From Klebsormidium nitens (lineage: Eukaryota > Plantae > Klebsormidiophyceae), in assembly GCA_000708835.1 (NCBI GenBank), contig DF237614.1:1-46880 (forward strand): 46,880 nt of DNA, given 5' to 3'. Below the pieces are notes generated by a model that had not been told where the DNA came from, ran no database searches, and saw only the letters and a list, made by a program, of their open reading frames with translations. Shown piece by piece: positions 6,019-45,394 of this stretch. Every line of letters starts with the position of its first letter. Positions within the stretch are counted from its first letter, which is position 1. Both the position numbers and the translations under genes were made by a program.

Positions 6019-6277
6019 AACCTTAAATCACGAAGTCACTAACCCGAAGTCACCCCGTCAGACTGGATAAAGGTGACTGGATAAAGGTGAGTGTATTTGG
6101 ACTGGCGTAGTTGGACTGACCCTAAAACCTAAAATCACGAAGTCGTTAACCCTAAGTGACCCCCAAAAATCGTAAAACCCTAAAACAAAATGGTGGATAA
6201 AGGTGATTGTATTTGGACTGGCGTGTTGACTGACTTCAAAACCTAAAATCACGATGTCGCTAACCCTAAGTCACCCC
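6015..6277. repeat. ~107-114 bp tandem repeat (2.4 copies) containing degenerate AAAACCCT telomere motifs
   Basis: Units start at 6015, 6122 and 6236 with (c)taaaacc(t)aaaatcacga..taaccc..agtcacccc; the internal tggataaaggtga..tgtatttggactggcgt block is repeated. Confidence 0.85.
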
Positions 6278-8880: not shown

Positions 8881-11800
8881 ATGCGGGCCCCCAGATTGTT
8901 ACCCTCTTTCCAGCTCCTTTTGTTTCTCCTCCTTGCCGCAGCTTCCACTTCAGAAGGTCAATCAGCGCCCTCAGCAGAGCCTGCAGCTACCTCAGTGCTT
9001 ACAACAGCCCCTCAGACACCAGTCCTGACAGTACCGGCAGCGACGCCCACTTTGACATCCACCCCTCCGCTCGCAACACCCTTGTCTGAAACAGAGCCAC
9101 CTGCCACAACCACCCCACTTGGCACATCAGCCCCCCCTACTCCCGCAGTGCCAGAAGTTCCCCCCACTCCAGTCCCTGTTGTTCTAGCCACACCCCCGCC
9201 TCTTATGGATCCTTCACCTGCCCCCCTCATAGCAACAGCCAGTCCAGCACCCACCAGCTCTGCCGTGCCACCTGTCACGAGTCCCACTGAGGCTGCCAAC
9301 CCTCTTCCAACAACTGGGGTTGCTGTTCCCCCGGCTCTGCCACCAGGTACAGACTTGTCAATCCCACCGCCCACAATTCTGCCGGGTGCCCCACGCCTGT
9401 CTGCACCTACTGAGACCTCTCTCCCAGCGTCCGTCCCCTGCACAACTCTTGCAGCAGCGCTTCCCAATGTCACTGTGGAGTCGCCTTTGCCCAAATGTCA
9501 CGTTTCCATCGATGATTCCTTATGTTACTTTGCCCCTCGCAACTGCATCGTTGGCACCCTTTGCATTGCCGCCTGTCCTAGCCAGTCACCTATTCCCACC
9601 CAATTTCTTAACCTCAAAAAGGAATCTCCCATCTCTAAACCATCTCTGCAGCTCACAGCAGTCCCGGCGTCCGTGTCCCCCTGCGTCCGTCGCCTTTCCA
9701 GGCGCGTTGGAACCGCCTGGTAACTGCACACTGAGCCCTAGCCATTTGCCCCGTGCAGCGACTTCATTGCCACCCAGTGCACCAACCAACGTCTCTCCAA
9801 AGCTGGCTCCAAATCCAGGCGCGGCCACCATTGGAAGCCTCATTTTCGCATCACCCCCAAGCACGAGCCTGGGGCCTGCACCGTCCACCCTCAACGTGTC
9901 ATTGACAAACATAAGTCTGGCGCCATCTCTCAGCTCCCCCAACCACAACACCTCTTCCAACGTCACATTGGCGCCCTTTTCCAGTGCTCCCAACTGGACC
10001 AACTCGTCAAACACCACAACAGCACCCTCCATCAGCCCCCTGAACCGGTCCAACTCTTCTAATGTCACGCTGGCACCTTTTCCTTCGGGCCCAAACCTAA
10101 CCAATATCACAAATACCACTGCGAGTCTTGCCCCCAGCCCGGCGCAGGCAGTACTGTACGCCCCAGCGCCCGCACCTGGGAGAATCAATGTAACCCTGGC
10201 TCCTGGTCCAAGTCCCGACGGAGCACGCCCTTCAAACACGTCTCCGGCGCCCGCTCCGGCGCAAAATGCAAGTGTTGGAAATTCTAGCCAGAGGGTACAG
10301 AATACTACAATCTTTGTGCCTGGCAGACTGGAAGTGGCCCCTTCTTCCCAGTTGCCGCGAGGGTCGGGCAACGTGCGGTCTGTGGCGCCAACCGCAAACT
10401 ACCAGATGAGGTTTTCCACAGCTGTTCCGCAAAATATGGGGAGCGTACTGCAGGTAAGCTAGCTCTTGAAGCCTCCCGGCCAGCGTTTGGGTCCAGCTCT
10501 CCTTATTGCACCACTGCATTGATTAGATCAACCCTGCTGCATCCAGTTGATCTTATTGCAATCGCTTTGGGTGTCAGATTCAGAAATGAGCTTGGGCGTT
10601 GGCACATGGCAGAGCAGAAATGCAGACAGTTACTAAGAATCATAGAGTCCTTTGAATGTTTGTGCCTCGCTTTCGACAAGTTTAATTGTTTATTGAAGGA
10701 GCTCTGATGGCAATCGCCTCTCTTGCCCTGCATGAGCGGAACAAAGTGTAGCCTTAAAAGGATCCAACTTTCGATCCCTTTGCAATAGTATTGCTCTCTA
10801 TCACAGGGTTCCCCACAAGCAAATTTTACGAACCAGTTGGAGTCGGTGGTCCAATACCATCTGGATCCTGCATCGGGGCAGCAATGCGGACAGTCGTGCG
10901 TGGCGTTCTGCCAGGCAAGCAAAGCCCTCTGCCGCCAGCAGTGAAACCTTGTTGTTGCTCAATGCATCAGAAGTGACCCAAGGCAAATCGAAACTACTAA
11001 TTTCAAAATCGATTGGCTACCCAATTGCGCAGGCATGTGTCGGAGCCTATCAGTGGTACAGATGTGCCGCCCTTTCATGTTCCTGTTATTTTAAGCTTAG
11101 TGACGTACGTGCAAAGCATCGATCGCCTCGATCCTGTTTATGGCAGAAGTTAGATTAGTAAGCTGGGTTTGTCGATTTAACATCGACCTGCGCATCAATT
11201 CTGAAGTCATTTGCCTCTTCAATGCTTTATTCCCGCAGCTAGATGACGATTCTGCTAAAGAGTGCGGGAAAGCAGACGCGAGTGCTGCAACAGGCCGCTT
11301 GAGCGACGGTTACCACCGCATGACCGTCCGCTACTATGCTACGCGTAATGCCAGCGAGCCGTTTGCAGTGTACAGCACCTTCTTCCTTGTTGGTGAGTGC
11401 CTAAGACACAGCGCCAAATGTATTGGGCGCTGAACGTCGCTGACGTAAGTGGAAGCGCATGATTGAGCACGGTCATCAGCTCACTCTGGCCATGACTGAT
11501 GCAGTGCCTGATCTTATGTAGAGGAAAGATGGGCCATCATGTGGTCATCGTTTCCCTGCTTGCCCGTTCTTGTGGGAGCACGTTTGTTTACAACGCACTG
11601 TGTCGGGGTTGTTGGCCTTGCAGAATTATCTGCAGCAAGGATAGTCGTGCGTCGGCTTACTAGGAACCTTCTGACGTTTTATCCTACTCGGCGTCTCCCC
11701 AGAGCTCAATCAGAAACAACGAGATGGCCAGAAACATTCCAAAAGAACAAATCTCGGCTCAGAGCCCGCTCCTTTCTTTCGAAAAAGCGATAACCAACTG

Positions 11801-20485: not shown

Positions 20486-22034
20486 CACTTTGTTTCAATA
20501 TGGAGAAGCAACCATGTTGGAGGCATATAAGAACACATAACGAGGTTGGCGGCTAGTGACGCAAAAGGCGAGCAGGAGTCGAGCTCCGGTCCGGGGTAGG
20601 GAGCTTCCGACGGCCACCTGTCGGGTGACGAAAACCGGGTGGCTGAGAGCGGAGCCAATGATCCAGACACTGTAGCACACGCCGAGGTTATCATGCACGA
20701 AGTAACTAGCTATACCCCTTTTGGTTAATTCCGTTGCGATTTGGAGTCGGATCATTGTAATTTTCTTTATTGACGGGGCCCTATAAGCAAGCCCTTGCCA
20801 TTCGCCACCTTTAGCAACTAATCCGCAATTATTCAGGGCCAGACAACTTCATAAGCAACCAGGGTTACGTCACTCGGGCCCACATTGATAGGTTCAATTA
20901 GGACTACTAAAAACGATTCATGCCATTAGTTCCTCATACTTCACACGCTTCTCAACTTTGTCAACAGTTCATCTCTTCACATTATTCTCTTCTACGCTTC
21001 TTGCATTTCACGCGCTGGCTGTCCACTGTCGCCTTTCATTTTGTTGTAACACATACATCCGTACAAAATCGTGTTAATTCTCGAGACGCGCTGGCTCTTA
21101 CTGGACGTCGCTTTGCCGGACCTAGCTCGACTGTCCGTGTCTCAATCTTACTTTCTGTGACTTCACTTGCGTGGACCGTTGTGAAGTAGCTTCGAGCAGT
21201 TCAAAGCGGGGTCAGCTGTGAATGGCGCCGGTAAAAGCCGCCGCTTCAAAAGAATACGCAGGTTCTACTGACTAGGGTCTGCCACAGACTTAAGGCGCCT
21301 CTTCAAGCGAGGGGCATCATGGCATCCTTGCATGTGTGTGTCTGGATTCCTTAGCTTGATCTGCATGACTCCATATATGCTTCGTGTCGAGTTTCGGCAA
21401 GGTGCTGGACAGCTACTTCCTCGACAAGATTGACGAAGGCACTCTGAAGCAGTTGGAGGAGGACGATGAAGCGCAAGAGAAAGCGCATCAGCGCTACATT
21501 GCGGACAGGGAGGTATGGAAAGTAGCACAGCTGAGGCACCGGTGTGGTGTGGTGTGGTGTAGTGTGGTGGGCAAAATGAGTCGGAAAACGGGGTGAGTGC
21601 TTGGTTTGAAGGGCAAATGGGGGCAAACAGCTCTGAAGCAGTACCTATCGTCATTACCGACTCGACAAACCGGAATGATTCTGCACCGTCCGATCTTGCT
21701 GCTGACGCGGCACAATGACTGTCTGACGAGGATCGGAAGGCAGTCAATTGGTCTAAAACCCTAAAACCCCCCCCTTAAACAAAAACCCCTAAATAAAGGG
21801 GTTTAAACTAAGGGTGTGTGTGTGTGGTGTGTGGTGAGTGTTGTGTTTCTAGGATATCCGGCATGAAGAGTGCCTCTCCGATAGAATGCAGCAACCCTTC
21901 CCCAGAGGGGATATCACACTGGCGCCTTTTGCGCGTTTGTGCCCCATTGAAGGTATAAGAATGGTATAAGAATGGGGTATAAGCGCTCTGCCAAAGGAAG
22001 GGGAAGGGGAAGGGGAAGGGGGACCCGTACCGTA

Positions 22035-23240: not shown

Positions 23241-23557
23241 TACGGTACCGGTACTAGTACCGGTATTTTTGTGTCACTGCGAGAGAGTGTCGATATCCAC
23301 GATCTGACAGTCCCTTCTGGCGGCCTGCTTGGCGTCCCCTCTGTGTGCGTTGTGTGTTGTGTGTTGTCGTTGACATCCGACAGTCCGAAATGTACGCCCA
23401 GTCGGGCCAGTACCGCCTCGTTCTAGTGTCGTTGAGGGGTAAAACCCTAAAACCCTCAAATGAGGTCAGGGGGGGGTTTAGGGGGGTTTTAGGGTTTTAG
23501 GGGGTTCAGCAGAGCGTCCATCTCTAAGATGTTCCAGGCACAGTTCCGTCTACTACT

Positions 23558-24664: not shown

Positions 24665-25017
24665 TAAGTAGTTGACTAAACATTTGCACCTCGGTTTGAA
24701 ACTTCCTGCCATTGTAGTAGGATGCAGTAGTCCAAAAACAAAGTATGTAAAAACGTGAGGGCCCCATCAATCTAGGAGTGTTTGCTGAACACACTGGATT
24801 GTTGCTTCAAATTTTTGAACAGGGTCCAAGCCTGAGTCCAAGCCTGAGTCTGTAAGAAGCGAGTTGTTTGTTGTAGACGGGTTGTGAGAACCATGTTTGA
24901 TCTGTCAGATGAACCACCGAGAATTAGGCTAAGGATTGTACATGGAAGGCAAGTGCTTGAGAGCGTGCACTGGCTTACGTCTAAATGCCATAAACAAAGA
25001 ACTCAACGCTGCTGCCG

Positions 25018-25047
25018 TAAAACCCTAAAACCCTAAAACCCTAAAAC
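25018..25047 (-). repeat. Interstitial telomeric tract (TTTTAGGG)3+
   Basis: TAAAACCCTAAAACCCTAAAACCCTAAAAC, perfect units. Confidence 0.95.
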
Positions 25048-25311
25048 ACTAGCTGCATACCTTCGCTGCCGAGCAGCATGTTTGGCATTCTGCTCTTCTT
25101 TTGAAACAGACGCAACTGGTCCTAGCTTGATAACAGGAAGCGGCCCCTCCTCAAAGTGAACCTTGAGCCTGTGCTGTTGGAAAAGCTCCATCTGACGGGT
25201 ACGCGGAAACCTTTGCTTGCAAATGCCCCCATCTTCCAAATGCAACTCGCAGATCCCGAAAGAGTCCTTTCTGATGAATCCTGTCTCCTCTGAAGTTTTC
25301 TTGGCCGCCAT
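25033..25311 (-). pseudogene. C2H2-like zinc-finger ORF terminating inside the telomeric tract
   Basis: C-x9-C..F..QQHRLKVH spacing; the stop TAG is supplied by the telomere repeat. Confidence 0.35.
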
Positions 25312-31133: not shown

Positions 31134-31509
31134 TGTCCCTCTTGTGTGTGTTTTTCCCTTGAGCAGCCACAAATTGCAGTGAGAAAACCGCTCTGGTCGA
31201 TCTGTCGTTGGTCTTGCACGGGGGCTTAATCTAAAAGAACCTTGCACTCCTTGAGACATGTGATTCTCCCTTGAAGTATACCATTACCGTAGTCTACCGT
31301 TACCAGATGACGCCAGACACGACCGTCCGCGACACATATGACGATCCAGATATTTTACAAACTTTCCCGCGCAAACCTCTGCATTGTGCCTAAGGGGAGT
31401 CCTGCTCACTTTCATTTTTTCGGCATAGAGACAGACGCAGAGAAGCAAGATGGTGGGGATCTACGCCGTCAGGTCCGGGGAGGTGCCATGCCATATGAAT
31501 GTCATGCTA

Positions 31510-31564
31510 CAGCCTGTTCAGAATAAAATGGCACACTCGCCATAGTACTCTGCCGTATCTACTG
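31510..31564 (-). mobile_element. 55-bp internally deleted relic of the Fanzor element
   Basis: 31510-31560 matches the Fanzor right end (46/51 vs the reverse complement of 39293-39343), followed by ACTG; TA on both sides (31508-09, 31565-66). Confidence 0.85.
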
Positions 31565-31633
31565 TAGGATCATGTTTTGACTATCAGGTAACGTGAGAGT
31601 ACTGACAAAAATCCTCTCATATATCAGAAAAGT

Positions 31634-33944
31634 ATGCCCACTGCATCATACAAAGCTACTACCGTTTGTGGTGGAGTAGTATTCATATCGTTTTTGGCAA
31701 CCATGCTCTACATGGTCGGGTGGTCCCCCAGCAGCTCCGCACGGAGTCCTCTCGCGGCGAGTCTAGAGCTGGAAACGCTCTCCGGAATCGAAGATGAGAT
31801 CAAGAACGTGGTCGATGGCTCTATGAGAGCGTGCGTGACGGCCGGCCGGGCCATAGCTTCCGGTTTAGAAGGCAATGAAGACACTTGGGACGCCATCCAC
31901 GCAAGAAGCCCCGCCCTCTGGGGAAACCTTGCAGGGCTCCAGGTACTTCACCAGCGCCGGATTCCAGTCCGCGAGCAATCTGTCCCTTTCTTTCGTCCGG
32001 ACAGGTAACAGCATCATAGAATACACACGAAACGCGACGGATGCACCCAACATCACTGGTTACGAGGTATCATACGATTCAGGCAGAGCATCGCCCATCC
32101 CTACGAACTTCATCGCAACCCCACCCCTACAATACAGAGAATGGTACGTGAGAGCGGTCGCGCAGCAGGACAGAGCGATCGTCACGCCCTTGCTGAGCGT
32201 GCTGGGCTATCCCACCGTCATCGTCAGCTACGCGATTTCCGACAGTACGGATACGCTGAGAGGAGCGGTCAACTTGGGTCTGGACGTCAGCTTCGTCCTG
32301 TCGACCCTGGCGAGCAGGAATCGCACGGATTTCTCCACAACGTACGTGACAATACGTCAGAGTGGCGATCTGCTCCCCCTGACGCAGAGCCCTAACTTCA
32401 CGCAATTCGTGAACGCCTACAACTCGACCGACCCCTTTGTCTCCGAAAGCGCCCGCAAGCTCGGAAACGCACTCTATGACGAGAAGGATTACAACCTGCA
32501 GATACGCCTGCGGGGTCGCAGGTATTTCGTGGGAGTGAAGAAGCTTCTGAACAACGTCGATCTTACGATGGTAGTCCTCATGCCGAGGGACTACTTCTTC
32601 GCTCGGGTGGACCACGACAGGACCGTGACCATCGGGGTCTTCTGCGCGGCCATGGCCCTCTGGGCTGTGTTCGCGCTGGTAGTCAGTATTGCCTTCTTCA
32701 GGTTGCGGAAGCGGGAGCGGATCCTACGGGCCGCCGCCAAACACGAGGAAGAACAGCATAAGCTCAAGCAGATTCTGTTGACCAGGCTGAGCCACGAGTT
32801 GCGGACGCCGATGACCGTAGTCATGGGTTTGCTGGAAGAGCTCCAGAACGATTGTAAACAAGAGGACCTCATGGAGAACGTGAACCTGTTGAAGAAGACG
32901 AGCATCGATATGTTGCACCTTTTAGACGGAATTCTCGTCCTCGCGAAGAACGAAGCCGGAAAGACAAACGTGGAGAAGCAACTGTTCGACCTGAAGGCCG
33001 AGCTGAAGGCCGCTTTAGCAGCCATAGCCCCTCTCCTAACACCCCAAGGAGTGACCACGAGCCTCAAGTACGATGAGCACATGGCAAAGGAATTCGTGGG
33101 TGACCGCCGCGTGTTGCGGCAGATCCTGGACAACCTCCTAAACAATGCGGCAAAGTTCACGGACCACGGGCGTATCGAGATCGAGGTCGCGGGGAATCCA
33201 GTGAAAACGGACGATAGGTACCTCGTAGAGATCATGGTGAGAGACACGGGCATAGGTATCGATCCTTCTCGACGAGAAGCCATCTTCGAAGAATTCGTGC
33301 AGGCCAACGATCGTATGAAAACTCTTTACGGAGGTAGCGGTCTCGGTCTGAGCATAGTGCGTTCGCTTTGCAGACTATTGGGCGGGGACATCACCGTGGA
33401 TTCCTCGTCGAGCCAGGGTACCTGCTTCCGATTTTCAGTGTCACTTGGCGTCCCATCCGCGTCCATCAGGAGGTCCGAGGTGGTGAGCGAGACCATGAAG
33501 AACGACGACTCTCCGTTGGAAGGCATCCGCGTGTTGGTGGCGGAGGATACACGACTCATTAGTAAAATCCTGGAGCGCTTCCTGCTAAAAGAGGGGGCTA
33601 GAGCCACGATGTCGGAAGACGGAAAGGCGGCTCTGGACATCTATTGCGAGCGGCCGTTTGACTACGACATCATCCTCATGGATTTGCAGATGCCTCGTTT
33701 GGATGGTTACGAGGCTACAAGGCAGATCCGTAAGCTGGAAACGGACGGTGCCCTCCCGGGGCGGGTCCCCATCGTTGCGTTGACCGCCCACGCCATGGAG
33801 AACGATGCGATCAAGTGCCGTGAGGTGGGAATGAATGATTACATCCGGAAGCCGATTTCCCGCGAGACCATGTTGTCCACTATCCTCAGCCTCGCCCGAT
33901 CTAAGCGGCTCAGCAGTTCGCGTTCGAATATTTTGAATCCTTGA
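31634..33944 (+). pseudogene. Intronless hybrid histidine kinase, AHK1-like (TM, sensor, TM, HisKA, HATPase, receiver), with one +1 frameshift at GGGG 31920-31923
   Basis: H-box LSHELRTPM, N-box LLNNAAKFT, G1 RDTGIGI, G2 GGSGLGL, receiver AEDT..ILMDLQMPRLDG..KPI. Removing one G joins ORFs 31634 and 31875 into ~769 aa. This could be a sequencing error. Confidence 0.9.
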
Positions 33945-36016: not shown

Positions 36017-36858
36017 ATGGCTTCTCTCCTCGATTGCGCAGCCATCTCGTGGGCTGCATACACCGGCCTCGCGGGAATAAACAGAGAGCTGCCTGACTCG
36101 TGCAGAGACCTACTGCTCGGTTACGAGATCCGGGATGTGGCGGAGGGTGTCGTGATGGCGAAGAGGGGCAAGAGCGTCGTCCTCGCATTCAGGGGCACCG
36201 TGAGCTGGAGAGACATCGGAAGCGACCTCGAGCTATGGAGGAGGGAGCCCTGTAGGAAGATAACGAAGGTGGATGGCGCGTTGGTCCACGATGGTTTCGC
36301 CGACGCCTACCGCCGAGTCGCATGCAGTTGCATAGCCATCCTCGAGCATACCTTGGGAAAAGACGATCCATGACGGTGACGGGTCATTCAATGGGGGCAG
36401 TCGAGGCCCAGCTCTGCGCTCTGCACGTGGCGAGTGCGCTCGACATCAAGGACGTCCGTTGCGTGACCTTTGGTTCGCCAGGAGTGGGCAACGCAGCCTT
36501 CGTATCGGCCTTCTCTTCGGTGGTAAAGGAAAGCGTGAGGGTCGCCCACGTGCTCGATCCTATACCCAAGATCCTGCCTGCTGCTTATTTCGTGCAGACG
36601 CCCGAGCTTCAATCGGTGAAGGGGGAAGCCACGGTGAGCAGAGTGGCGAGCTCTGGCTTTTTGAGTCAACTATGGGGTAAGTTGCTACAGCTCGTGGAGG
36701 GGGACATGCGCTACCACAGGCTGGCCACGTACATCGCGTGTCTGCGTGAAGAATCGGCTACCGAACGTGCACCTCAGGATGTAAAGTCTGACGAGACCGA
36801 AGAAGAATACCACGCAGATTCGACGGGCATGCCGGAAGGCTCTCCGACGGACGCTTGA
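36017..36858 (+). pseudogene. Class 3 lipase with a -1 frameshift near 36367-36372
   Basis: LAFRGT, VHDGF, GHSMG nucleophile elbow, TFGSPGVGN, DPIP and the His in YHRL, split over two overlapping frames. Confidence 0.88.
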
Positions 36859-36956
36859 GCGGACTTTTCGCGGTTTCGTCGTTTGTCCTTCTTCGATATT
36901 ACAGTCTGTCCAGAGTAAATGGCACACCTTTTCTTTCAGCGATCGAACCGTCCGAG

Positions 36957-37232
36957 CTCCGAGAGCTCCTAGATCACCACGTGGTGGCCACATGCGTCTG
37001 AACTCCAAGAGCTTCTAGTTCGCCACGTGGTGGCAACAGGCGTCCGAACTCTGAGGGCTTCTAGTTCGCCACGTGGTGACCACAGGCGTCCGAACTCCGA
37101 GGGCTTCTAGTTCGCCACGTGGTGGCCACAGGCGTCCGAACTCCGAGGGCTTCTAGTTCGCCACGTGGTGGCCACAGGCGTCCGAACTCCGAGGGCTTCT
37201 TGTTCGCCACGTGGTGGCCACAGGCGTCCGAA
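36957..37232. repeat. Six tandem 46-bp units, each with a CCACGTGG G-box
   Basis: Consensus CTCCGAGGGCTTCTAGTTCGCCACGTGGTGGCCACAGGCGTCCGAA; units start at 36957, 37003, 37049, 37095, 37141 and 37187. Confidence 0.97.
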
Positions 37233-37279
37233 CGACTTCAGTCCGAAAGGTTCTTCACTTCGGACGACCTCTCTCGGAG

Positions 37280-37285
37280 TATAAA
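37280..37285 (+). promoter_or_regulatory. Putative TATA box of Fanzor 1
   Basis: GAGTATAAATG is conserved in both elements (42825-42830), ~40 bp upstream of the likely ATG. Confidence 0.5.
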
Positions 37286-37320
37286 TGCAAGAAAGATGTC
37301 ATTTTCACAAACATTCCCAG

Positions 37321-39219
37321 ATGGAGGAAGGAGCAGATGACTGCGAGAAGGCGCAGAGGAAGCGTCCAGATATCACTCTCCGAAGAGCACTCCGGAAGGA
37401 CAAGGAGACATCCGTGGTCCAGACGGGATGGAAGTTCCTCTGCCAGGAACGCGGCATAAGAGATCGGATCGAGGAGATCATCCCGGAGGTGACCCGCATC
37501 CGAGTCGAGACATGCCTCCTGCTCAATCTCCACTTCATCCGCCTCCTGGATGAGGGACGGCCCATACCCGTCATCGACCAGAACTTGGTCGGACGTGCTA
37601 TGCAGTGTACGTACTCCAAGAATCCGCAAGCGGACCCAGACCTCCACGAGACATTCGTCCACCACTACCTCCCCCTCTGCCCCAACCGTCCGAACAACGG
37701 CTGTCTCCCTCGCATCACCAACGTCCTCCTGGACCTCCGCAACCAGCTCCTCAGCAACATCAAGAATCACGTCGCGGTCCTCTTCCAGTCACGACACCGG
37801 GCCTTCATGAAGCTACTCCTCCGAGAAGCAGCTCCTGAGGTGCCGTTCTTCGGGGACGCGGACGAGGATCTGGAGTCATGCACCCGGCTGCTGACGACCG
37901 CCACGTTGTGGCGTCCGAACGAGAGCGTTCGAGAGCTGCTGCCGGAGTATCCTCGCATCTACGGAAAGATCCCCGAGGCAGCCATCGAGTGCCTGCAAGA
38001 TCTGGTCGACTCCGTCAGGCCGGAGGTTGGGCCGCGGCCTGCGGCGCCCCAGAGCAGACCTCACCTCTACATGCCCTGGATGAGGACCATCAGCGAGGAG
38101 TTCTCGGACCGCGACCTGTGGTCATTCTCCCTCGTGCCTCATGCCTCCTTCTCTGCACCCTTCATCGCGATCACTCCCACCACATGGCCCGAGCTGCAGC
38201 CCAAGACCGGCAAGAGAAAGGCTCCCGGAGAGCTCCGCGATGCTTTTCCCTCCATCGGACGGCTGGAGAGCGGTGGGAAGACCTTCGCAGACCGGATCAC
38301 CACGGACGGAGTGTCTACAAGCGTGTATTTCTTGGTGGAGAAGAGGACGCCCCCTCCGGAGGACAGAGTGGTCCACATCCACCCCGAGCAGCGCGTGGTG
38401 GGATTGGATCCAGGAAAGCACCCAGACTTCCTCACCGGCATTGCCGTGACCGGAGATTGGGACGGAATCGAGCGCCAGGAAGAGATCATCGGTCTGGGAA
38501 CCCGGGACTTCTACCACCGAGCGGGTTTCAAGAAGCGGACGTCCCTCATGCACTCCTGGATGTCCAGAGACCTGGATGTAGCAGCCTTCAACAAGGATGC
38601 TCCTTCGGGGAACACCGTGAGCCTGGAGGACTTCGGGAAGAGGGTGACCTTCGTCTGTGCGAACCTGTACGTCCTAGTACGCTTTCACACCGCGAGGAGG
38701 GTCCGGAAGCTGAGACGGCGAGTGACGATCCAGAGGCAGATCGAGGTGGACAGAGCTTGCAGGGCGATCACGGCAGGGAAGAAGACCGTGGTGGCTTTCG
38801 GAGCAGCACAGGTGTGGGCGGGCAGGACCAAGAGGCAGTGTGGGCCATGCGAGTCGGTGAAGAGGCGCCTCAGCAGCCACCACAAAGCGACGGTGGTCAT
38901 GATAGATGAGTTCAGGACAAGCCAGGTCTGCAGCACGTGCCACTCGGACGTCGACAAGTTCGCCGTGCTCAAGAGGCAGCGGGTGATGGAGGATGGACTC
39001 CCGACGGTGACCGAAGGAGGGCGTCGCAAGGACGATGACGAGGACGGAGGAGGGAGGACAAGCTACAAGACGTGCCACAACGTGCGAGCGTGTACGAACC
39101 CGCTCTGTCGCATGGTGTGGAATAGAGACGTCAACGCAGCTCGTAACATAGCTTGGATCTGTATGAGCATAGTCAGAGGCGAGGGCAGGCCAGCGGAGTT
39201 CACGAGAGCAGGAATGTGA
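37321..39219 (+). CDS. Fanzor: Fanzor1-type RNA-guided endonuclease (TnpB-like), ~632 aa
   Basis: RuvC-I VVGLDPG, RuvC-II position VAFG with relocated Glu in IDEFRTS, CSTC..CTNPLC zinc finger, RuvC-III NRDVNAARNI, basic N-terminal KRKR-like segment. The upstream ATG at 37285 overlaps the TATA motif. Confidence 0.95.
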   Translation: MEEGADDCEKAQRKRPDITLRRALRKDKETSVVQTGWKFLCQERGIRDRIEEIIPEVTRIRVETCLLLNLHFIRLLDEGRPIPVIDQNLVGRAMQCTYSKNPQADPDLHETFVHHYLPLCPNRPNNGCLPRITNVLLDLRNQLLSNIKNHVAVLFQSRHRAFMKLLLREAAPEVPFFGDADEDLESCTRLLTTATLWRPNESVRELLPEYPRIYGKIPEAAIECLQDLVDSVRPEVGPRPAAPQSRPHLYMPWMRTISEEFSDRDLWSFSLVPHASFSAPFIAITPTTWPELQPKTGKRKAPGELRDAFPSIGRLESGGKTFADRITTDGVSTSVYFLVEKRTPPPEDRVVHIHPEQRVVGLDPGKHPDFLTGIAVTGDWDGIERQEEIIGLGTRDFYHRAGFKKRTSLMHSWMSRDLDVAAFNKDAPSGNTVSLEDFGKRVTFVCANLYVLVRFHTARRVRKLRRRVTIQRQIEVDRACRAITAGKKTVVAFGAAQVWAGRTKRQCGPCESVKRRLSSHHKATVVMIDEFRTSQVCSTCHSDVDKFAVLKRQRVMEDGLPTVTEGGRRKDDDEDGGGRTSYKTCHNVRACTNPLCRMVWNRDVNAARNIAWICMSIVRGEGRPAEFTRAGM

Positions 39220-39243
39220 GGATGACTGAGAATTAGTCGAAAG

Positions 39244-39343
39244 ACATAGCTGCCTAGAAACGAGTTCATCTAGGCACTTCGGTGAGAATCCGAGATACGG
39301 CTGGGTACTGTGGCGAGTGTGCCATTTTACTCTGAACAGACTG
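39244..39343 (+). ncRNA. Conserved 3' part of the Fanzor omega/fRNA scaffold (guide expected immediately 3')
   Basis: 100 nt, 96% identical to 44788-44887; hairpin TGCCTAGA/TCTAGGCA, cUUCGg motif, GAGT(G/A)..TACTC stem. The 5' boundary is unknown. Confidence 0.8.
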
Positions 39344-39400
39344 TATCCCTCGAGAGTATCAGACCCCGTCCTCGGGGCAAATCTGGGCACGTATAAGGAC

Positions 39401-40567
39401 ATGCCTATAGGGCTCGCCATATGGAGAGACCCCACTAATCGCTTCGTGTGCAAGTCGGAGCCCCTGGGTACTGGTGGGAGCAAGAGAGTGTACCGAGCAT
39501 TCGACAGAAAGACGGGCCGCGAGGTCGCTTGGAGCAGGGCTCCATTGCCGTCAGAGGGTACGAGGGAGACCACAGACATACTCGACGAGATCGATATGAT
39601 GAAATCGCTGGACCACCCTAACATCGTGAAGTTGATCAGCTTCTGGATAGAGAAGCGGACGAACGAGGTGATCCTCATAACCGATTTATATCACGGATCT
39701 CTGGATGCCTACGTTCGCAAGCATGGCAAGCAGGAACCGTGCGTGATACGAAAGTGGACTATCCAGATCTGCGAGGCAATAGAGTATCTGCACTGTCACT
39801 TTGAGAATCCGATCGCTCACCGCGACATAAAGTGCGCCAATATATTCGTGAACAACTACACGGGCGACGTCGCCCTAGGAGACTTAGGCTTCGCGACGAT
39901 GATGAGCAGGTCCAAGTCCGATCGTTCCGTCCTCGGTACGGCTCACTTCATCGCACCCGAGGTCCTCAGCGGCCGCGCCAGCCGCAAGGGCGACATCTAC
40001 TCGCTGGGCATGACGCTGATCGAGATGGCTACGCTGAAGAAGCCCTACTCCATGATCAAGAATCAGAGTCAGCTGTACATGCTGGTCCTGGACGGTGCCT
40101 CTCCGGACGAACTCGTCTTCATAAAGAACAAGAATCTTCGGGCACTCGTGGAAAAGTGCATCAGGCCCTTAGAGACGAGACCTTCGATCGGGGAGGTGCT
40201 GAGAGAACCTTTCATCACGGACTGGTTCCCACTAAAAGATTTCGCAGATCGAGACGTGTCAAAGATACTATCTAGCACTTCGAGTATACGAGTGATGGCA
40301 AAGTGCGGCGCAAAGACCGCATCCGGTAAGACCTGTCGTAGGACCGTGTCTTCCGGTCATAAGCGGTGCTATCAACACAAGCGGGCCAAGTCCGGCAGAA
40401 GAGCAGTGCCAAAGAGAATGACCATGAGAGCTCACCCTGCCAACGCCGACCGCATCCATCGGCTGACCGAGAAGCTTCTGAGAAAGGGTCTCACCAGAGC
40501 GGAGATGAAGGAGCTGAAGCGGCGCGTGAGGTCTAGGGACGAGATGATGAGATCGTTCTGGCTCTGA
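39401..40567 (+). CDS. WNK: WNK-family Ser/Thr kinase with C-terminal CCCH zinc-ribbon/basic extension
   Basis: Lys in the Gly-loop (LGTGGSKRVYRAFD), VAWS at the usual VAIK position, HRDIKCANIFVN, GDLG, GTAHFIAPE; intronless; tail C..KT.SG.TC.R.V...C.QH. Confidence 0.88.
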   Translation: MPIGLAIWRDPTNRFVCKSEPLGTGGSKRVYRAFDRKTGREVAWSRAPLPSEGTRETTDILDEIDMMKSLDHPNIVKLISFWIEKRTNEVILITDLYHGSLDAYVRKHGKQEPCVIRKWTIQICEAIEYLHCHFENPIAHRDIKCANIFVNNYTGDVALGDLGFATMMSRSKSDRSVLGTAHFIAPEVLSGRASRKGDIYSLGMTLIEMATLKKPYSMIKNQSQLYMLVLDGASPDELVFIKNKNLRALVEKCIRPLETRPSIGEVLREPFITDWFPLKDFADRDVSKILSSTSSIRVMAKCGAKTASGKTCRRTVSSGHKRCYQHKRAKSGRRAVPKRMTMRAHPANADRIHRLTEKLLRKGLTRAEMKELKRRVRSRDEMMRSFWL

Positions 40568-40613
40568 AACCCGCCTCGCCTATTCCTGCGCCGTCATGTC
40601 GCAAACTATATCC

Positions 40614-42590
40614 CTATCCCGACCTGGTGTTAAGGTCTGAGGCATCGGCCCTAGGGGTTCTATCCCGCGGCGAAAGAAAGGGGGGTGGTAGATCATGCAA
40701 TGCGTCATCCTGCACGAATTTTATCTTGGTAACCCCATCTGCCAACAGATCTAGCTCGGCGAGTGCCTTCATGACGGTGAGCATCAGCCGGTTCTTATTG
40801 GCCAGTCTGACGTCGACTTGCTGAAAATTCGTGCGATGCGACACGAGAAAAGTTAGTAGTATCTTTTCGTTATCAAACTGCTTCATGTTCAACGTCACCT
40901 TTGGGTACCATTGCTCTGGGTTCGCTTGAAGAAAGCGCAAGATGCACGCTCTCATCTCTTCGATCTTCTTCTGGGGGGTGCCCCAGCCCAGCGCCAGATC
41001 GATGAGCTCGATCTGATCGGGGGACCTGTAGTAGTTGCTGATGACCTTCAGAGCCAGTTGATTGTTGCTGTAGTATACCTTGCTGTTGTCCGCTGCTAGG
41101 AGGATCGTGGACAGCAGCTGCATCTCTTCCACCACGTAAGTTTGCCCGTCCACCCTGATGATATCCGAAACGTCAAAGGGGTGCGTAACAAAGAGGAAGA
41201 TTATGGACTCGAATACGGTCTTGCAGGTGTTGCCAAAGACGAATAGGGAGGCCAGGAAGGATCCCGACGTGACGACGAGCAGCTTCTGCACGTTGACGTT
41301 GAGCACGAAGAGGCACATAAGGACGACGATAACTCCCACCACCCAATCCAACAGCCTGCTGAGGGATCTTATCGCAGTCTTCGTGTCGCTCAACGTCAGA
41401 GCCAATGCCTTCCGCTCGCGCACTACGTTGATGAGCCAGTTTTCGAACGATTCGCACGTCACCACGCCCTCCTCGCTCTCAAAGGCCTGGAAAGCCCGCT
41501 CGGCGTCGTTCTCCTCCAAAAAATGGAACAGGTCATGAATCACCATATGGTGTCTCCCCTCTGGTACCACATTCTTGAAGATGTCCCTCGCGGCGTCCCG
41601 TCCGTGCTCCTCGCTCCGGACGTCCCTCTGCTGCTGCGTGGAGATGGTCGTGATCTTGGTGCTGCGCACGAAGCGCATGATGCTCTGGAACGTCCGAACG
41701 CCGAGTTGCCCCTGAGAGAGCGTAGCCAGGACTCCCACCTCCTCGTGGGGTTCGCCGCGTATGCCGGTCGTCGCTGAGTCTACCTCGATCCTTGAAGATC
41801 TATTGAGCATGTAAGCAGGTATGGAGAGTCGTTCTATGACGTAGTGGTCGAACATGGCGTCCCTGATCCTCTCGAAGTAGGCCTTTCTATGAAATGCGTT
41901 CGCGAGGATCTTGATGAATATCACTTTTCCCGCCATCACGAGGGTGGCGATCTGAGTGCACACTAGTATCTGATTCACCTTGACTGGTATCTTGCCCACG
42001 ATCTTCCTCCTCCCGTTGAAGAGGAGCGTCCAGACGCACAGGACTTGCAGGCACCAGATCACGTTCCAGGCGGACCTTCGCACGCCGTAAGCCACATACA
42101 GTATCTTTCCGTTGTCCTTGAAGATCATCTGGAGTAAGAAGATCATCGTGTATACCAGAACCCTCCCTATGAGCCTGCCCGAGAGCAGCGTCAGGAGCAG
42201 GACGGTCCACTTCCAGACCTCCAGCTCCGAGATGGTGGACCTAGAGAAGAAGAGCAGGGAGATCACGATCTGCGTTACCAAGTATCCACCCAGCGCCATC
42301 TGCCCATACGCGAGCAATCTCCTCGAGAGACGGGTCTCGCGTACCGTGGATGGGGATCGAGGATTCTCCTCGTCCTCCTCACCCTCCTCATCCTCCGAGA
42401 GGGCTCCCAAGATCGACGTCTTTTGTACCTCGCCGGTCTTTATGGCGTCCAAGACCGCGGAGTGTGGTACGCTGTGCATGTTTCCCTGCAGCGGTCCGCT
42501 CACCAAAACCGTGGGTTCGAAGTCACGAGACTTGGTCATCGACGCCCGCCGCCCGAATTTCAGGGAAGCGCTTCGCTTGTAGTCCTGCAT
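40614..42590 (-). CDS. MSL: MscS-like mechanosensitive channel, plant MSL4-10 type (~658 aa)
   Basis: Multiple TM segments; FVFGNTCKTVFESIIFLFVTHPFDVSD, VVEEMQLLST and KVYYSN..ISNYYRSPD; intronless. The start is taken at MQDYK because the longer ORF begins inside the transposon. Confidence 0.92.
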   Translation of the reverse strand: MQDYKRSASLKFGRRASMTKSRDFEPTVLVSGPLQGNMHSVPHSAVLDAIKTGEVQKTSILGALSEDEEGEEDEENPRSPSTVRETRLSRRLLAYGQMALGGYLVTQIVISLLFFSRSTISELEVWKWTVLLLTLLSGRLIGRVLVYTMIFLLQMIFKDNGKILYVAYGVRRSAWNVIWCLQVLCVWTLLFNGRRKIVGKIPVKVNQILVCTQIATLVMAGKVIFIKILANAFHRKAYFERIRDAMFDHYVIERLSIPAYMLNRSSRIEVDSATTGIRGEPHEEVGVLATLSQGQLGVRTFQSIMRFVRSTKITTISTQQQRDVRSEEHGRDAARDIFKNVVPEGRHHMVIHDLFHFLEENDAERAFQAFESEEGVVTCESFENWLINVVRERKALALTLSDTKTAIRSLSRLLDWVVGVIVVLMCLFVLNVNVQKLLVVTSGSFLASLFVFGNTCKTVFESIIFLFVTHPFDVSDIIRVDGQTYVVEEMQLLSTILLAADNSKVYYSNNQLALKVISNYYRSPDQIELIDLALGWGTPQKKIEEMRACILRFLQANPEQWYPKVTLNMKQFDNEKILLTFLVSHRTNFQQVDVRLANKNRLMLTVMKALAELDLLADGVTKIKFVQDDALHDLPPPFLSPRDRTPRADASDLNTRSG

Positions 42591-42865
42591 CTCCTCATTT
42601 TCCACCAGAAAATTACCGTCTGTCCAGAGTAAAATGGCACACCTTTTTTTTCCAGCGATCGGACCGTCCGAGCTCCGAGAGCGTCTGAACTTCAAAAGGC
42701 CTCTGGGTTGCCACATAGTGGCTACAGGTATCCAAAGTCCGAGAGCGTCTAGTTCGCCAAGTGGTGGCCACGGGCGTCCGAACGACTTCAGCCCGAAAGG
42801 ACCTTCGGACAACCCCTCACGGAGTATAAATGTCAGAAAGATGTCATTTCCACAAACATTCCCAG

Positions 42866-44770
42866 ATGGACGAAGGGGCAAATGACTCCGAGACGGCGAA
42901 GAGGAAGCGTCCAGATATCACTCTCCGAAGAGCACTCAGGAAGGACAAGGAGACATCCGTGGTTCAGACGGGATGGAAGTTCCTCTGTCAAGATCTCGGC
43001 ATAAGAGATCGGATCGAGGAGATCATCCCGGAGGTGACTCGCATCCGAGTCGAGACTTGCCTCCTGCTCAACCTCCACTTCATCCGCCTTCTGAATGACG
43101 GACGGCCCATACCCGTCATCGACCAGAACTTGGTCGGACGTGCTATGCAGTGTACGTACTCCAAGAATCCGCAAGCAGACCCAGACCTCCACGAGACATT
43201 CGCCCACCACTACCTCCCCCTCTGCACCAATCGTCCGAACAACGGCTGCCTCCCTCGTATCACCAACGTCCTCCTGGACCTCCGCAACCAGCTCCTTAGC
43301 AACATCAAGAATCATATCGCGGTCCTCTTCCAGTCAAGACACAGGGCCTTCATGAAGCTACTCCTCCGAGAGGCTTCTCCAGATGTGCCGTTCTTTGGGG
43401 ACACGGACGAGGATCTGGAGTCGTGCACCCGGCTGCTGACGACCGCAACGTTGTGGCGTCCGAACGAGAGCGTCCAAGAGCTGCTCCCGGAGTATCCTCG
43501 TATCGACGGCAGGATTCCAGAGGCAGCCATCGAGCACCTGCAGGATCTCGTGGAGTCCGTCAGGCCGCAGGTCGGGCCGCTGCCGGCAGCACCTCAGAGC
43601 AGACCTCACCTCTACATGCCCTGGATGAGGATCATCAGCGAGGAGTTCTCGGACCGCGTGCTGCGGTCTTTCTCCCTCGTGCCTCACGCCTCCTTCTCTG
43701 CACCTTTCATCGCCATCACCCCTACCACGTGGCCCGAGCTGCAGCCAAAGAGCGGCAAGAGAAAGGCTCCGGGAGTGCTCCGCGATGCTTTTCCCTCCAT
43801 CGGACGGCTGGAGAGCGGTGGGAAGAGATTCGCGGACCGGATCACCACGGATGGAGTGTCCGCTAGTGTGTACTTCTTGGTGGAGAAGAGGACGCCCTCT
43901 CCGCAAGACCGAGCGGTGCATATTCACCCCAAGCAGCGCGTGGTGGGGCTGGACCCAGGAAAGCACCCTGACTTCCTCACGGGCATCGCCGTGACGGGCG
44001 ACTGGGATGGCATCGCGCATCAGGAGGAGGTCATCGGCCTGGGAACCCGGGATTTCTACCACCGAGCAGGATTCGAGAAGCGGACGTCCCTCATGCACTC
44101 CTGGATGTCCAGAGACCTGGACGTGGCAGCCTTCAACAAAGATGCTCCTCCCGGGAACACCGTGAGCCTGGAGGAGTTCGGGAAGAGGGTGAGCTTCGTT
44201 ATGGCGAGCTTGTACGACCTGGTACGCTTTCATACAGCGAGGAGGGTCCGAAAGCTGAGGCGGAGAGTGACGATCAAGAGACAGATCGAGGTGGACAGAG
44301 CGTGCAAGAGGATCACGGCAGGGAAGAAGACCGTGGTGGCTTTCGGGGCCGCAGAGGTGTGGGCGGGCAGGACCAAGAGGCAGTGTGGGCCATGCGAGTC
44401 GGTGAAGAGACGACTCAGCAGCCATCACGGGGCGACGGTGGTCATGATAGACGAGTTCAGGACGAGCCAGGTGTGCAGCACGTGCCACTCGGACGTAGGG
44501 AAATTCGCCGTGCTGAAGAGGCAGCGGGTGATGGAGGATGGACTCCCGACGGTGACCGAAGGAGGGCGTCGTGAGGACGAGGACGAGGAAGGAGGAGGGA
44601 GGACGAGCTACAAGACGTGCCACAACGTGCGAGCGTGTACTAACCCGCTATGTCGCATTGTGTGGAACAGAGACGTCAATGCAGCTCGCAACATAGCTTG
44701 GATCTGTATGAGCATAGCGAGAGGCGAGGACAGGCCAGCAGGGTTCACGAGAGCAGGAGTCTGGCAATGA
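42866..44770 (+). CDS. Fanzor: Fanzor1-type endonuclease, second copy, ~634 aa
   Basis: Same catalytic motifs intact; about 57 amino-acid differences from copy 1 by manual count (~91% identity). Confidence 0.95.
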   Translation: MDEGANDSETAKRKRPDITLRRALRKDKETSVVQTGWKFLCQDLGIRDRIEEIIPEVTRIRVETCLLLNLHFIRLLNDGRPIPVIDQNLVGRAMQCTYSKNPQADPDLHETFAHHYLPLCTNRPNNGCLPRITNVLLDLRNQLLSNIKNHIAVLFQSRHRAFMKLLLREASPDVPFFGDTDEDLESCTRLLTTATLWRPNESVQELLPEYPRIDGRIPEAAIEHLQDLVESVRPQVGPLPAAPQSRPHLYMPWMRIISEEFSDRVLRSFSLVPHASFSAPFIAITPTTWPELQPKSGKRKAPGVLRDAFPSIGRLESGGKRFADRITTDGVSASVYFLVEKRTPSPQDRAVHIHPKQRVVGLDPGKHPDFLTGIAVTGDWDGIAHQEEVIGLGTRDFYHRAGFEKRTSLMHSWMSRDLDVAAFNKDAPPGNTVSLEEFGKRVSFVMASLYDLVRFHTARRVRKLRRRVTIKRQIEVDRACKRITAGKKTVVAFGAAEVWAGRTKRQCGPCESVKRRLSSHHGATVVMIDEFRTSQVCSTCHSDVGKFAVLKRQRVMEDGLPTVTEGGRREDEDEEGGGRTSYKTCHNVRACTNPLCRIVWNRDVNAARNIAWICMSIARGEDRPAGFTRAGVWQ

Positions 44771-44787
44771 GAGATATATAGTTCAAT

Positions 44788-44887
44788 ACATAGCTGCCTA
44801 GAAACGTGTTCATCTAGGCACTTCGGTGAGAATCCGAGATACGGCAGGGTACTGTGGCGAGTATGCAATTTTACTCTGAACAGACTG
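44788..44887 (+). ncRNA. Conserved 3' part of the Fanzor omega/fRNA scaffold, copy 2
   Basis: Same hairpins as copy 1 (44795-44802/44813-44820); ends at the TIR. Confidence 0.8.
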
Positions 44888-44914
44888 TATCACGGGAATT
44901 AGCATAATCGAGCG

Positions 44915-45394
44915 ATGGAGGCGATAAACCCTCTCTACGGGCAAGCTTTCGGAGCTGCCCAGAAGCATCTCCCCGGCGCCCTCTCTCAGCTGGCGGATAC
45001 CACCGGCATGTACAGCGACGGTCTATTGGACTTTCTAAACGGACCCACGGCCGCTCAGATCAAGAAATTCTTCATAGTGCTACGCATAGTGGCCACGGCC
45101 GCACTGCTCTACTACGCCTACTGGTTTAGCAACAAGTTGAGGTCGATTTCCCTCGAGAGGCAGTATGAATCGGAGGAGAGGAGGCAGACGGAGGTGGCGA
45201 GGGCTCTCGCGGAAAACACCCTCTGGTTGGGGTCTCAGAGAGGGGTTATCCCCCTCATCTGGGACATATGGATGACGCTCCTCTTCACCTTTGTAATCGT
45301 ATATGGCGTGAAGCAAGTGCTGGAGAAGCGCCTCGGCGAGTATGTCATGCGGCAGATCGCCGAACAGGCCGCCGCCGTGCTCAAGAAGAAGTGA
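44915..45394 (+). CDS. Hypothetical membrane protein (2 TM)
   Basis: 159 aa; hydrophobic FFIVLRIVATAALLYYAYWF and IWMTLLFTFVIVYGV. Confidence 0.7.
   Translation: MEAINPLYGQAFGAAQKHLPGALSQLADTTGMYSDGLLDFLNGPTAAQIKKFFIVLRIVATAALLYYAYWFSNKLRSISLERQYESEERRQTEVARALAENTLWLGSQRGVIPLIWDIWMTLLFTFVIVYGVKQVLEKRLGEYVMRQIAEQAAAVLKKK

Follow-up and report, generated by a model that had tools for sequence, protein, structure and literature searches.

The window analysed here is a scaffold of Klebsormidium nitens 46,880 nucleotides long (GenBank contig DF237614.1), and all coordinates are given in the numbering of this whole stretch. It contains two full copies of a transposable element, E1 and E2, each carrying a single gene for Fanzor1, a eukaryotic RNA-guided nuclease. 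E1 lies on the forward strand at 36902-39343, between TA dinucleotides at 36900-01 and 39344-45. E2 lies in the same orientation at 42616-44887, between TA dinucleotides at 42614-15 and 44888-89.

Insertion sites of the two full elements

Read directly from the sequence, the flanks are cgatAT-TA ... TA-TCcctc for E1 and gaaaAT-TA ... TA-TCacgg for E2. This reading bears out a preliminary description of the window, which had placed both full elements in the hexamer AT-TA-TC. The empty sites rebuilt from the flanks, cgatATTATCcctc for E1 and gaaaATTATCacgg for E2, also agree exactly with those given there. The likeness between the two loci ends at the ATTATC hexamers, so the two inserted independently and do not stem from a segmental duplication.

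In each copy the flanking T and the 5' TA of the target-site duplication (TSD) together spell TTA (36899-36901 for E1 and 42613-42615 for E2, forward strand). This trinucleotide corresponds to the TAM (target-adjacent motif) published for KnFNuc, a K. nitens Fanzor1 nuclease described below.

Ends, repeats and class of the elements

Sequence comparison places the terminal inverted repeats (TIRs) of E1 at 36902-36927 (CAGTCTGTCC...GGCACAC) and 39317-39343, and those of E2 at 42616-42642 and 44861-44887. The repeats are 26-27 bp long, 93% matched and open with TA-CAGTCTG; the left arm of E1 is one A shorter than the other arms. Termini of the form TA-CAGT are those of Tc1-type elements. The left terminus of E2 reads CCGTCTG instead of CAGTCTG, with CCG at 42616-42618 where the other termini, that of the relic described below included, have CAG. 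To judge from the sequence, this mutated terminal base may have cost E2 its mobility.

No transposase open reading frame (ORF) was found in E1 or E2, nor among the 18 ORFs scanned in the window, to which the search was confined. Given the TA duplication, the inverted repeats and the lack of a transposase, we file both copies as non-autonomous, Tc1/mariner-like Fanzor1 carriers of the class that Bao and Jurka described, an assignment to superfamily made from the TSD and the terminal bases only. A scan of metagenomes with the TIR pattern returned five matches, which had nothing in common with the elements beyond the pattern and are attributed to chance; the same scan of viral contigs returned none.

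Inside the left end of E1, a 46-bp tandem repeat of 6.2 copies extends over 36949-37233 on the forward strand, and its counterpart in E2 comprises only about two units (about 42681-42783). Every unit of the E1 array contains GCCACGTGG, which has a G-box-like CACGTG core, and the array ends just upstream of a conserved TATAAAT. This box, at 37280-37286 on the forward strand, lies about 35 nt before the probable start codon and is conserved in E2. From its sequence, the array may be a Fanzor promoter or enhancer of variable copy number, or a set of transposase-binding sites.

An internally deleted third copy

A BLAST search of E1 against the window matched only E1, E2 and a 53-nt right-end fragment at 31508-31560 on the minus strand. 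The fragment is directly adjoined by ACTG-TA (31561-66), the last four bases of the opposite terminus followed by TA, a juxtaposition that would arise by coincidence about once in 600 when a few positions of slack are allowed. We read the whole (31508-31566, minus strand: TA, 51 nt of right end, ACTG and TA) as an internally deleted 55-bp mini copy that has kept both ends, and not as a bare right end. Like E1 and E2, this relic has TA on both sides. Its structure is of the kind produced by interrupted gap repair, and it lies about 310 bp upstream of a hybrid histidine-kinase ORF (31875-33944).

In the orientation of the element, the empty site of the relic is aacatgatCC-TA-GCatgacatt. As the preliminary description had pointed out, the relic disagrees with the hexamer: CC-TA-GC differs from ATTATC at positions -2, -1 and +1 and matches only in the C at +2. 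Neither ATTATC nor TTA is therefore required for insertion.

The heptamer TACWGTA, which has the form of a mariner footprint, occurs at 10152, 24642, 27633 and 42097; together with the relic this makes five occurrences against 1.56 expected. We rejected a reading of these heptamers as excision footprints, which they probably are not: one is the relic itself, none follows TTA, and the copy at 42097 lies inside an intact ORF.

The Fanzor1 genes

Each element contains one continuous ORF. That of E1 spans 37321-39219 (632 amino acids plus stop) and that of E2 spans 42866-44770 (634 amino acids plus stop), both on the forward strand, and the two products are 91% identical. Their starts, MEEGADD in E1 and MDEGAND in E2, agree with homologues and with public gene models, and the proteins closest to both are K. 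nitens hypothetical proteins. The sole Pfam domain detected is PF07282 (OrfB_Zn_ribbon / Cas12f1-like TNB), which scores 29.5 and 29.8 bits where the gathering cut-off is 26.3.

The catalytic motifs GLDPGK, IDEFRTSQVCSTC and NRD are intact in E1. All 13 family members have GLDPGK unchanged, and it lines up with VIDPNK of SpuFz1, the Fanzor1 of Spizellomyces punctatus; Yoon et al. (2023, PMC10711439) place the RuvC-I aspartate of Fanzor1 in a DPG motif. The glutamate six residues ahead of the CSTC zinc finger is likewise conserved in the family, as is NRD, and the Fanzor signature series IDEFRTSQVCSTC ... CHNVRACTNPLC ... WNRD is present. The only relatives in the PDB are SpuFz1 (8GKH) and the Parasitella Fz1 (9CF0), and the motifs align with both. 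An AlphaFold2 model built from 13 sequences reached a mean pLDDT of 43.5, too low for the model to serve as evidence on the WED-REC-RuvC-TNB fold.

Between E1 and E2 the synonymous divergence (dS) is 0.30 and the nonsynonymous divergence (dN) 0.046, for a dN/dS of 0.15. These values indicate that the copies are old and that the gene has been under purifying selection. Protein-pattern scans of metagenome, viral and prokaryote collections retrieved no relative. Relatives that are 57-82% identical (P0004-P0012) occur in assemblies from JGI, ENA and Logan, where their contigs reach lengths of up to 127 kb, and with them the family extends, in diversified form, beyond K. nitens NIES-2285.

The public gene models over E1 (37321-40567) and E2 (42866-45394), examined exon by exon, are spliced chimeras. 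GAQ90634.1 (1040 amino acids) joins the E1 ORF to a downstream Ser/Thr kinase through an annotated intron from 39216 (GT) to 39339 (AG), whose removal would eliminate the 3' non-coding block, nearly to the base, together with the greater part of the right TIR. In GAQ90636.1 (730 amino acids) the E2 ORF is cut before RuvC-III and joined to a host ORF at 44963. Both chimeras are probably prediction artefacts, though transcripts reading through from the element into its flank would fit them as well.

A conserved 3' block and its putative RNA

Counting the right TIR and the 3' TA, the last 100 nt of each copy are far better conserved than neutral divergence would allow. This block (39246-39345 in E1 and 44790-44889 in E2, forward strand) differs at four positions, giving 96% identity, and the stretch right after the stop codon (39220-39245 in E1) is only 60% identical between the copies. 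Against a synonymous divergence (pS) of 0.247, conservation of this degree has P = 2.5e-8. On these grounds of sequence conservation, we take the block to be the putative scaffold of the guide RNA (omegaRNA or fRNA) in each element.

The consensus fold predicted for the block has three stem-loops. In the predicted third stem, ACAGACU at the end of the inverted repeat is paired to GGU.CUGU, which lies upstream, and GUA is left unpaired before the flank; in an alternative fold predicted for E1, the final CUGUA pairs with UACGG. The three-stem structure is a computational prediction, and Rfam gave no match anywhere in the window. Applying the register established in published Fanzor1 work, we predict guide templates at 39346-39365 for E1 (TCCCTCGAGAGTATCAGACC) and 44890-44909 for E2 (TCACGGGAATTAGCATAATC), both on the forward strand. 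Each is unique in the window, in which no second target of either guide was found.

Relation to KnFNuc

According to Jiang et al. (2023, Sci Adv, PMC10530073), KnFNuc is an intron-less K. nitens Fanzor1 with five genomic copies. The source of its fRNA is the 3' non-coding region next to the right end, and a 7N library gave TTA as its TAM, so that the in vitro TAM screen suggested in the preliminary description was already published in 2023. A cluster look-up for the present family returned exactly five K. nitens gene models (GAQ91395.1, GAQ90636.1, GAQ90634.1, GAQ92588.1 and GAQ89740.1), two of them in the window. The five copies differ from one another by up to about 10-14% in protein sequence.

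E1 and E2 thus resemble KnFNuc in species, Fanzor1 type, lack of introns, copy number (five) and, as predicted for E1 and E2, position of the RNA at the 3' side, abutting the right end. The T plus TA that precedes both full copies equals its TTA TAM. From species, Fanzor1 type, lack of introns and copy number we infer, with considerable confidence, that the E1/E2 family is the KnFNuc family. Neither the insertion sites nor the TA duplication nor the relic is described in the KnFNuc paper, as far as its text was available, and the supplements of Saito et al. do not mention Klebsormidium.

Register of the guide

Published Fanzor1 work indicates where scaffold and guide meet. According to Yoon et al. 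(2023, PMC10711439), the TIR and TSD of Fanzor1 elements belong to the RNA scaffold, with reads running about 15 nt past the TSD, an arrangement likened to that of IS607 with its fixed flank base. A 2026 review (PMC13565253) counts the 5' TSD towards the TAM and notes that, in structures solved so far, the 3' TSD belongs to the scaffold. The SPu-1 elements, which encode SpuFz1, provide a worked case: they have TA duplications, the left junction of the assayed locus is aaCA-TA-GTGCGGAG, the TAM is CATA, and the 75-nt scaffold ends ...CCGCAC-TA.

The preliminary description had proposed that the TAM of these nucleases mirrors the insertion motif, and for T-TA the published TTA of KnFNuc supports this. 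It had also offered three registers for the guide. If the guide starts just past the second TA, each empty site gives ATTA and then the guide, in accord with both the published TAM and the published architecture. By analogy with the systems above, this is probably the right reading, and the architecture is one already described for Fanzor1. Transcription leaving the element would append the flank as guide, TCCCTCGAG... for E1 and TCACGGGAA... for E2, to a scaffold that would end ...CAGACUGUA. On an unoccupied allele the target of this guide would follow T plus a single TA, which is the KnFNuc TAM. At the occupied locus the TAM position would read G-TA (from ...CTG-TA), and the difference between T and G would leave the donor uncut, a self-avoidance that is predicted here. 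The TTA TAM fits only if one TA stays in the empty site, since without a duplication the TAM position would be TAT or AAT; this independently supports the TA as a true duplication.

A guide opening at the duplicated TA itself, with the two or three preceding bases (..AT) as TAM, would recall the TnpB proteins of IS200/605, whose guides begin directly after the element end. In that register the TAM position would be TAT in E1 and AAT in E2, which the measured TTA contradicts if KnFNuc is of this family, and a guide that always opened with UA would conflict with the placement of the TSD in the scaffold. We give this proposal almost no credence.

The last register starts the guide at the terminal CUG. 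The nuclease would then re-cut the TA-CTG-TA footprint left by excision, and homologous repair would restore the element. In its favour, the footprint would read ATTA-CTGTATCC..., with a perfect match directly behind the TTA; the occupied end, AGA-CTGTA, would be protected; and the nuclease would gain a function in an element that moves by cut-and-paste and leaves footprints. Against it, published Fanzor1 scaffolds include the TIR and TSD, and the SpuFz1 scaffold used for structure determination and editing ends in TA. In both predicted folds the final CUG has its C and U paired inside the scaffold, and the TACWGTA heptamers of the window lack an upstream TTA, one of them lying in an intact ORF. 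What stands of this proposal is that TTA also precedes its target, and we regard it as very unlikely. As to the start after the second TA, the sharing of the tested enzyme's TAM by E1 and E2 and the exact boundary between scaffold and guide are both deduced from the published systems.

Significance of the shared hexamer

To gauge how often such a match arises by chance, we took as background the 2,956 oriented TA sites of the window, with the elements excluded. Two random sites share the bases at -2, -1, +1 and +2 with P = 0.0045, and a contiguous flank match totalling at least four bases has P = 0.0165. The hexamer match is real and nominally improbable by chance, and it comprises two sites only. 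T has a background frequency of about 22% at -1, and its presence there in both sites has P = 0.048; once both sites are TTA, the other three positions are shared with P = 0.018. At least two of three sites fall at TTA by chance with a probability of 0.12.

Only the T-TA part of the hexamer has a functional explanation. As a predictor of the TAM, which is how the preliminary description had used it, the hexamer holds for T-TA and is unsupported for the A at -2 and the TC, which have no counterpart in the published TAM and are mostly absent from the relic. The AT and TC were also considered as parts of the element or of a longer TSD and were ruled out, as they form neither inverted nor direct repeats and are absent from the relic. 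The hexamer is not palindromic. For the A at -2, and likewise for the TC at +1/+2, which have two sites behind them, chance is the simplest and most likely reading.

The whole of ATTATC could instead be a true extended motif, either because the Tc1/mariner transposase prefers it as a target or because a longer TAM (ATTA) goes together with guides that preferably open with TC. The four-base sharing (P = 0.0045, or 0.018 granted TTA) speaks for it, as do the A at -4 relative to TA and the C at +2, which all three sites have in common. A DDE transpososome has two-fold symmetry, and a palindromic site preference is expected of it, which ATTATC does not display. The relic moreover lies at CC-TA-GC, the published logo shows TTA only, and a fixed guide start would lower programmability, a cost that Fanzor1 is thought to avoid. 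We judge an extended motif improbable.

Pure coincidence has a better claim. The transposase would need TA alone, the landings at TTA would be luck, and the nuclease would have no influence on where copies are found. The probability that both sites are TTA is only modestly low (0.048, with 0.12 for at least two of three), the relic shows insertion at CTA to be possible, and there are two or three sites to go by. Set against this are the greater rarity of the full four-base match (0.0045-0.0165) and, as an anecdote, the position of both intact copies at TAM-compatible sites and of the sole decayed copy at one that is not. We consider coincidence possible, though we would not favour it. The T at -1 may reflect selection, through retention of TAM-compatible copies, or luck (p about 0.05, three sites), and the location of the only decayed copy at CTA is suggestive at most of a link to TAM-compatible retention.

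Interpretation

Taking these lines of evidence together, we think it likely that E1 and E2 are old, independently inserted, non-autonomous Tc1/mariner-like copies carrying Fanzor1 genes of the KnFNuc family, with a TTA TAM and a guide that begins after the second TA. The site anatomy, the intact catalytic motifs, the purifying selection, the conserved 3' block and the five family members come from the present analysis; the TTA TAM and the place of the TSD in both TAM and scaffold are taken from the literature.

Several points weigh against this explanation. The identity with KnFNuc is deduced from species, family type, lack of introns and copy number. The RNA fold contains no compensatory pairs, being derived from two near-identical sequences, and single-sequence folds are no better than those of shuffled sequences (z = -1.1 to -1.4). 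A TTA TAM would suit a guide starting at the terminal CUG equally well. The sites number two full copies and one relic, and the relic, at CTA, shows that TTA is not needed for insertion. Finally, excision of Tc1/mariner elements usually leaves footprints; with GTA in the TAM position, the usual ones could not be cut under a guide starting after the second TA, so that this explanation does not account for what such an element gains from its nuclease.

One speculative answer is that the nuclease shapes where a cut-and-paste Tc1/mariner element survives. Where a copy had landed at T-TA in the right orientation, the empty allele would be cut under RNA guidance and the copy restored; at other NTA sites, copies would decay by abortive repair. 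If so, E1 and E2 would have been kept intact and the relic at C-TA would have decayed, and the ATTATC match would hint at additional directional requirements on the site. We regard this as a long shot.

Earlier papers have already described the enzyme family, its TTA TAM and the division of the TSD between TAM and RNA scaffold. What the window offers is a check on consistency, in which the genomic sites of two natural copies agree with a TAM determined in vitro. Had this TAM been new, reading it from insertion sites would have been a cheap way to predict the targeting rules of a eukaryotic RNA-guided nuclease.

Comparison with other Fanzor and TnpB systems

A close parallel is SPu-1 of Spizellomyces punctatus, which carries SpuFz1 (Bao and Jurka 2013; Saito et al. 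2023). In both systems the element measures about 2.1-2.4 kb, has one Fanzor1 ORF (about 630 amino acids) and no transposase, and is bounded by TIRs of about 30 bp and a TA duplication. In both, the TAM consists of upstream bases plus TA (CA-TA for SpuFz1, T-TA here) and the scaffold, which is putative in E1 and E2, runs through the right TIR to TA. They differ in the sequences of the TIRs and in the upstream bases of the TAM, and their proteins are only distantly related (E = 1.5e-3, over the RuvC/TNB half only). SPu-1 has left more than 100 'ghost' loci, in contrast to the single relic found here.

The guide RNAs (reRNAs) of the IS607 TnpB of ISXfa1 and of insect-virus Fanzor1 proteins offer a second parallel (PMC10711439). 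As predicted for E1 and E2, invariant flank bases imposed by the transposase are absorbed into the scaffold and the guide is left free, and the Fanzor1 reRNAs have a three-stem shape, as does the fold predicted here. IS607 uses a serine recombinase and GG cores, whereas E1 and E2 presumably depend on a DDE transposase and use TA. E1 and E2 also resemble other non-autonomous Tc1/mariner elements, such as PUl-4 (Bao and Jurka 2013), which have a TA duplication, TIRs and Fanzor1 as their sole ORF.

Neighbouring genes and other features of the window

E1 begins 42 bp past the stop of a lipase-3 ORF (36322-36858) and ends about 50 bp before the probable ATG of a protein kinase. E2 occupies a very short divergent intergenic space, with gaps at 42597-42613 and 44890-44917. 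About 17 bp separate it from the probable ATG of an MscS-like channel gene on the minus strand (ORF 40614-42881); the ORF at 44915 has its ATG about 25 bp away. Both elements are therefore located in gene-proximal non-coding DNA.

The first 8 kb of the window hold AT-rich stretches, long C-runs and other repeat families. Interstitial telomere-like repeats of CCCTAAAA (TTTTAGGG) were seen at 25007-25054, 21753-21774, 23439-23460 and 6162-6187, partly arranged in inverted pairs (21753 and 23481).

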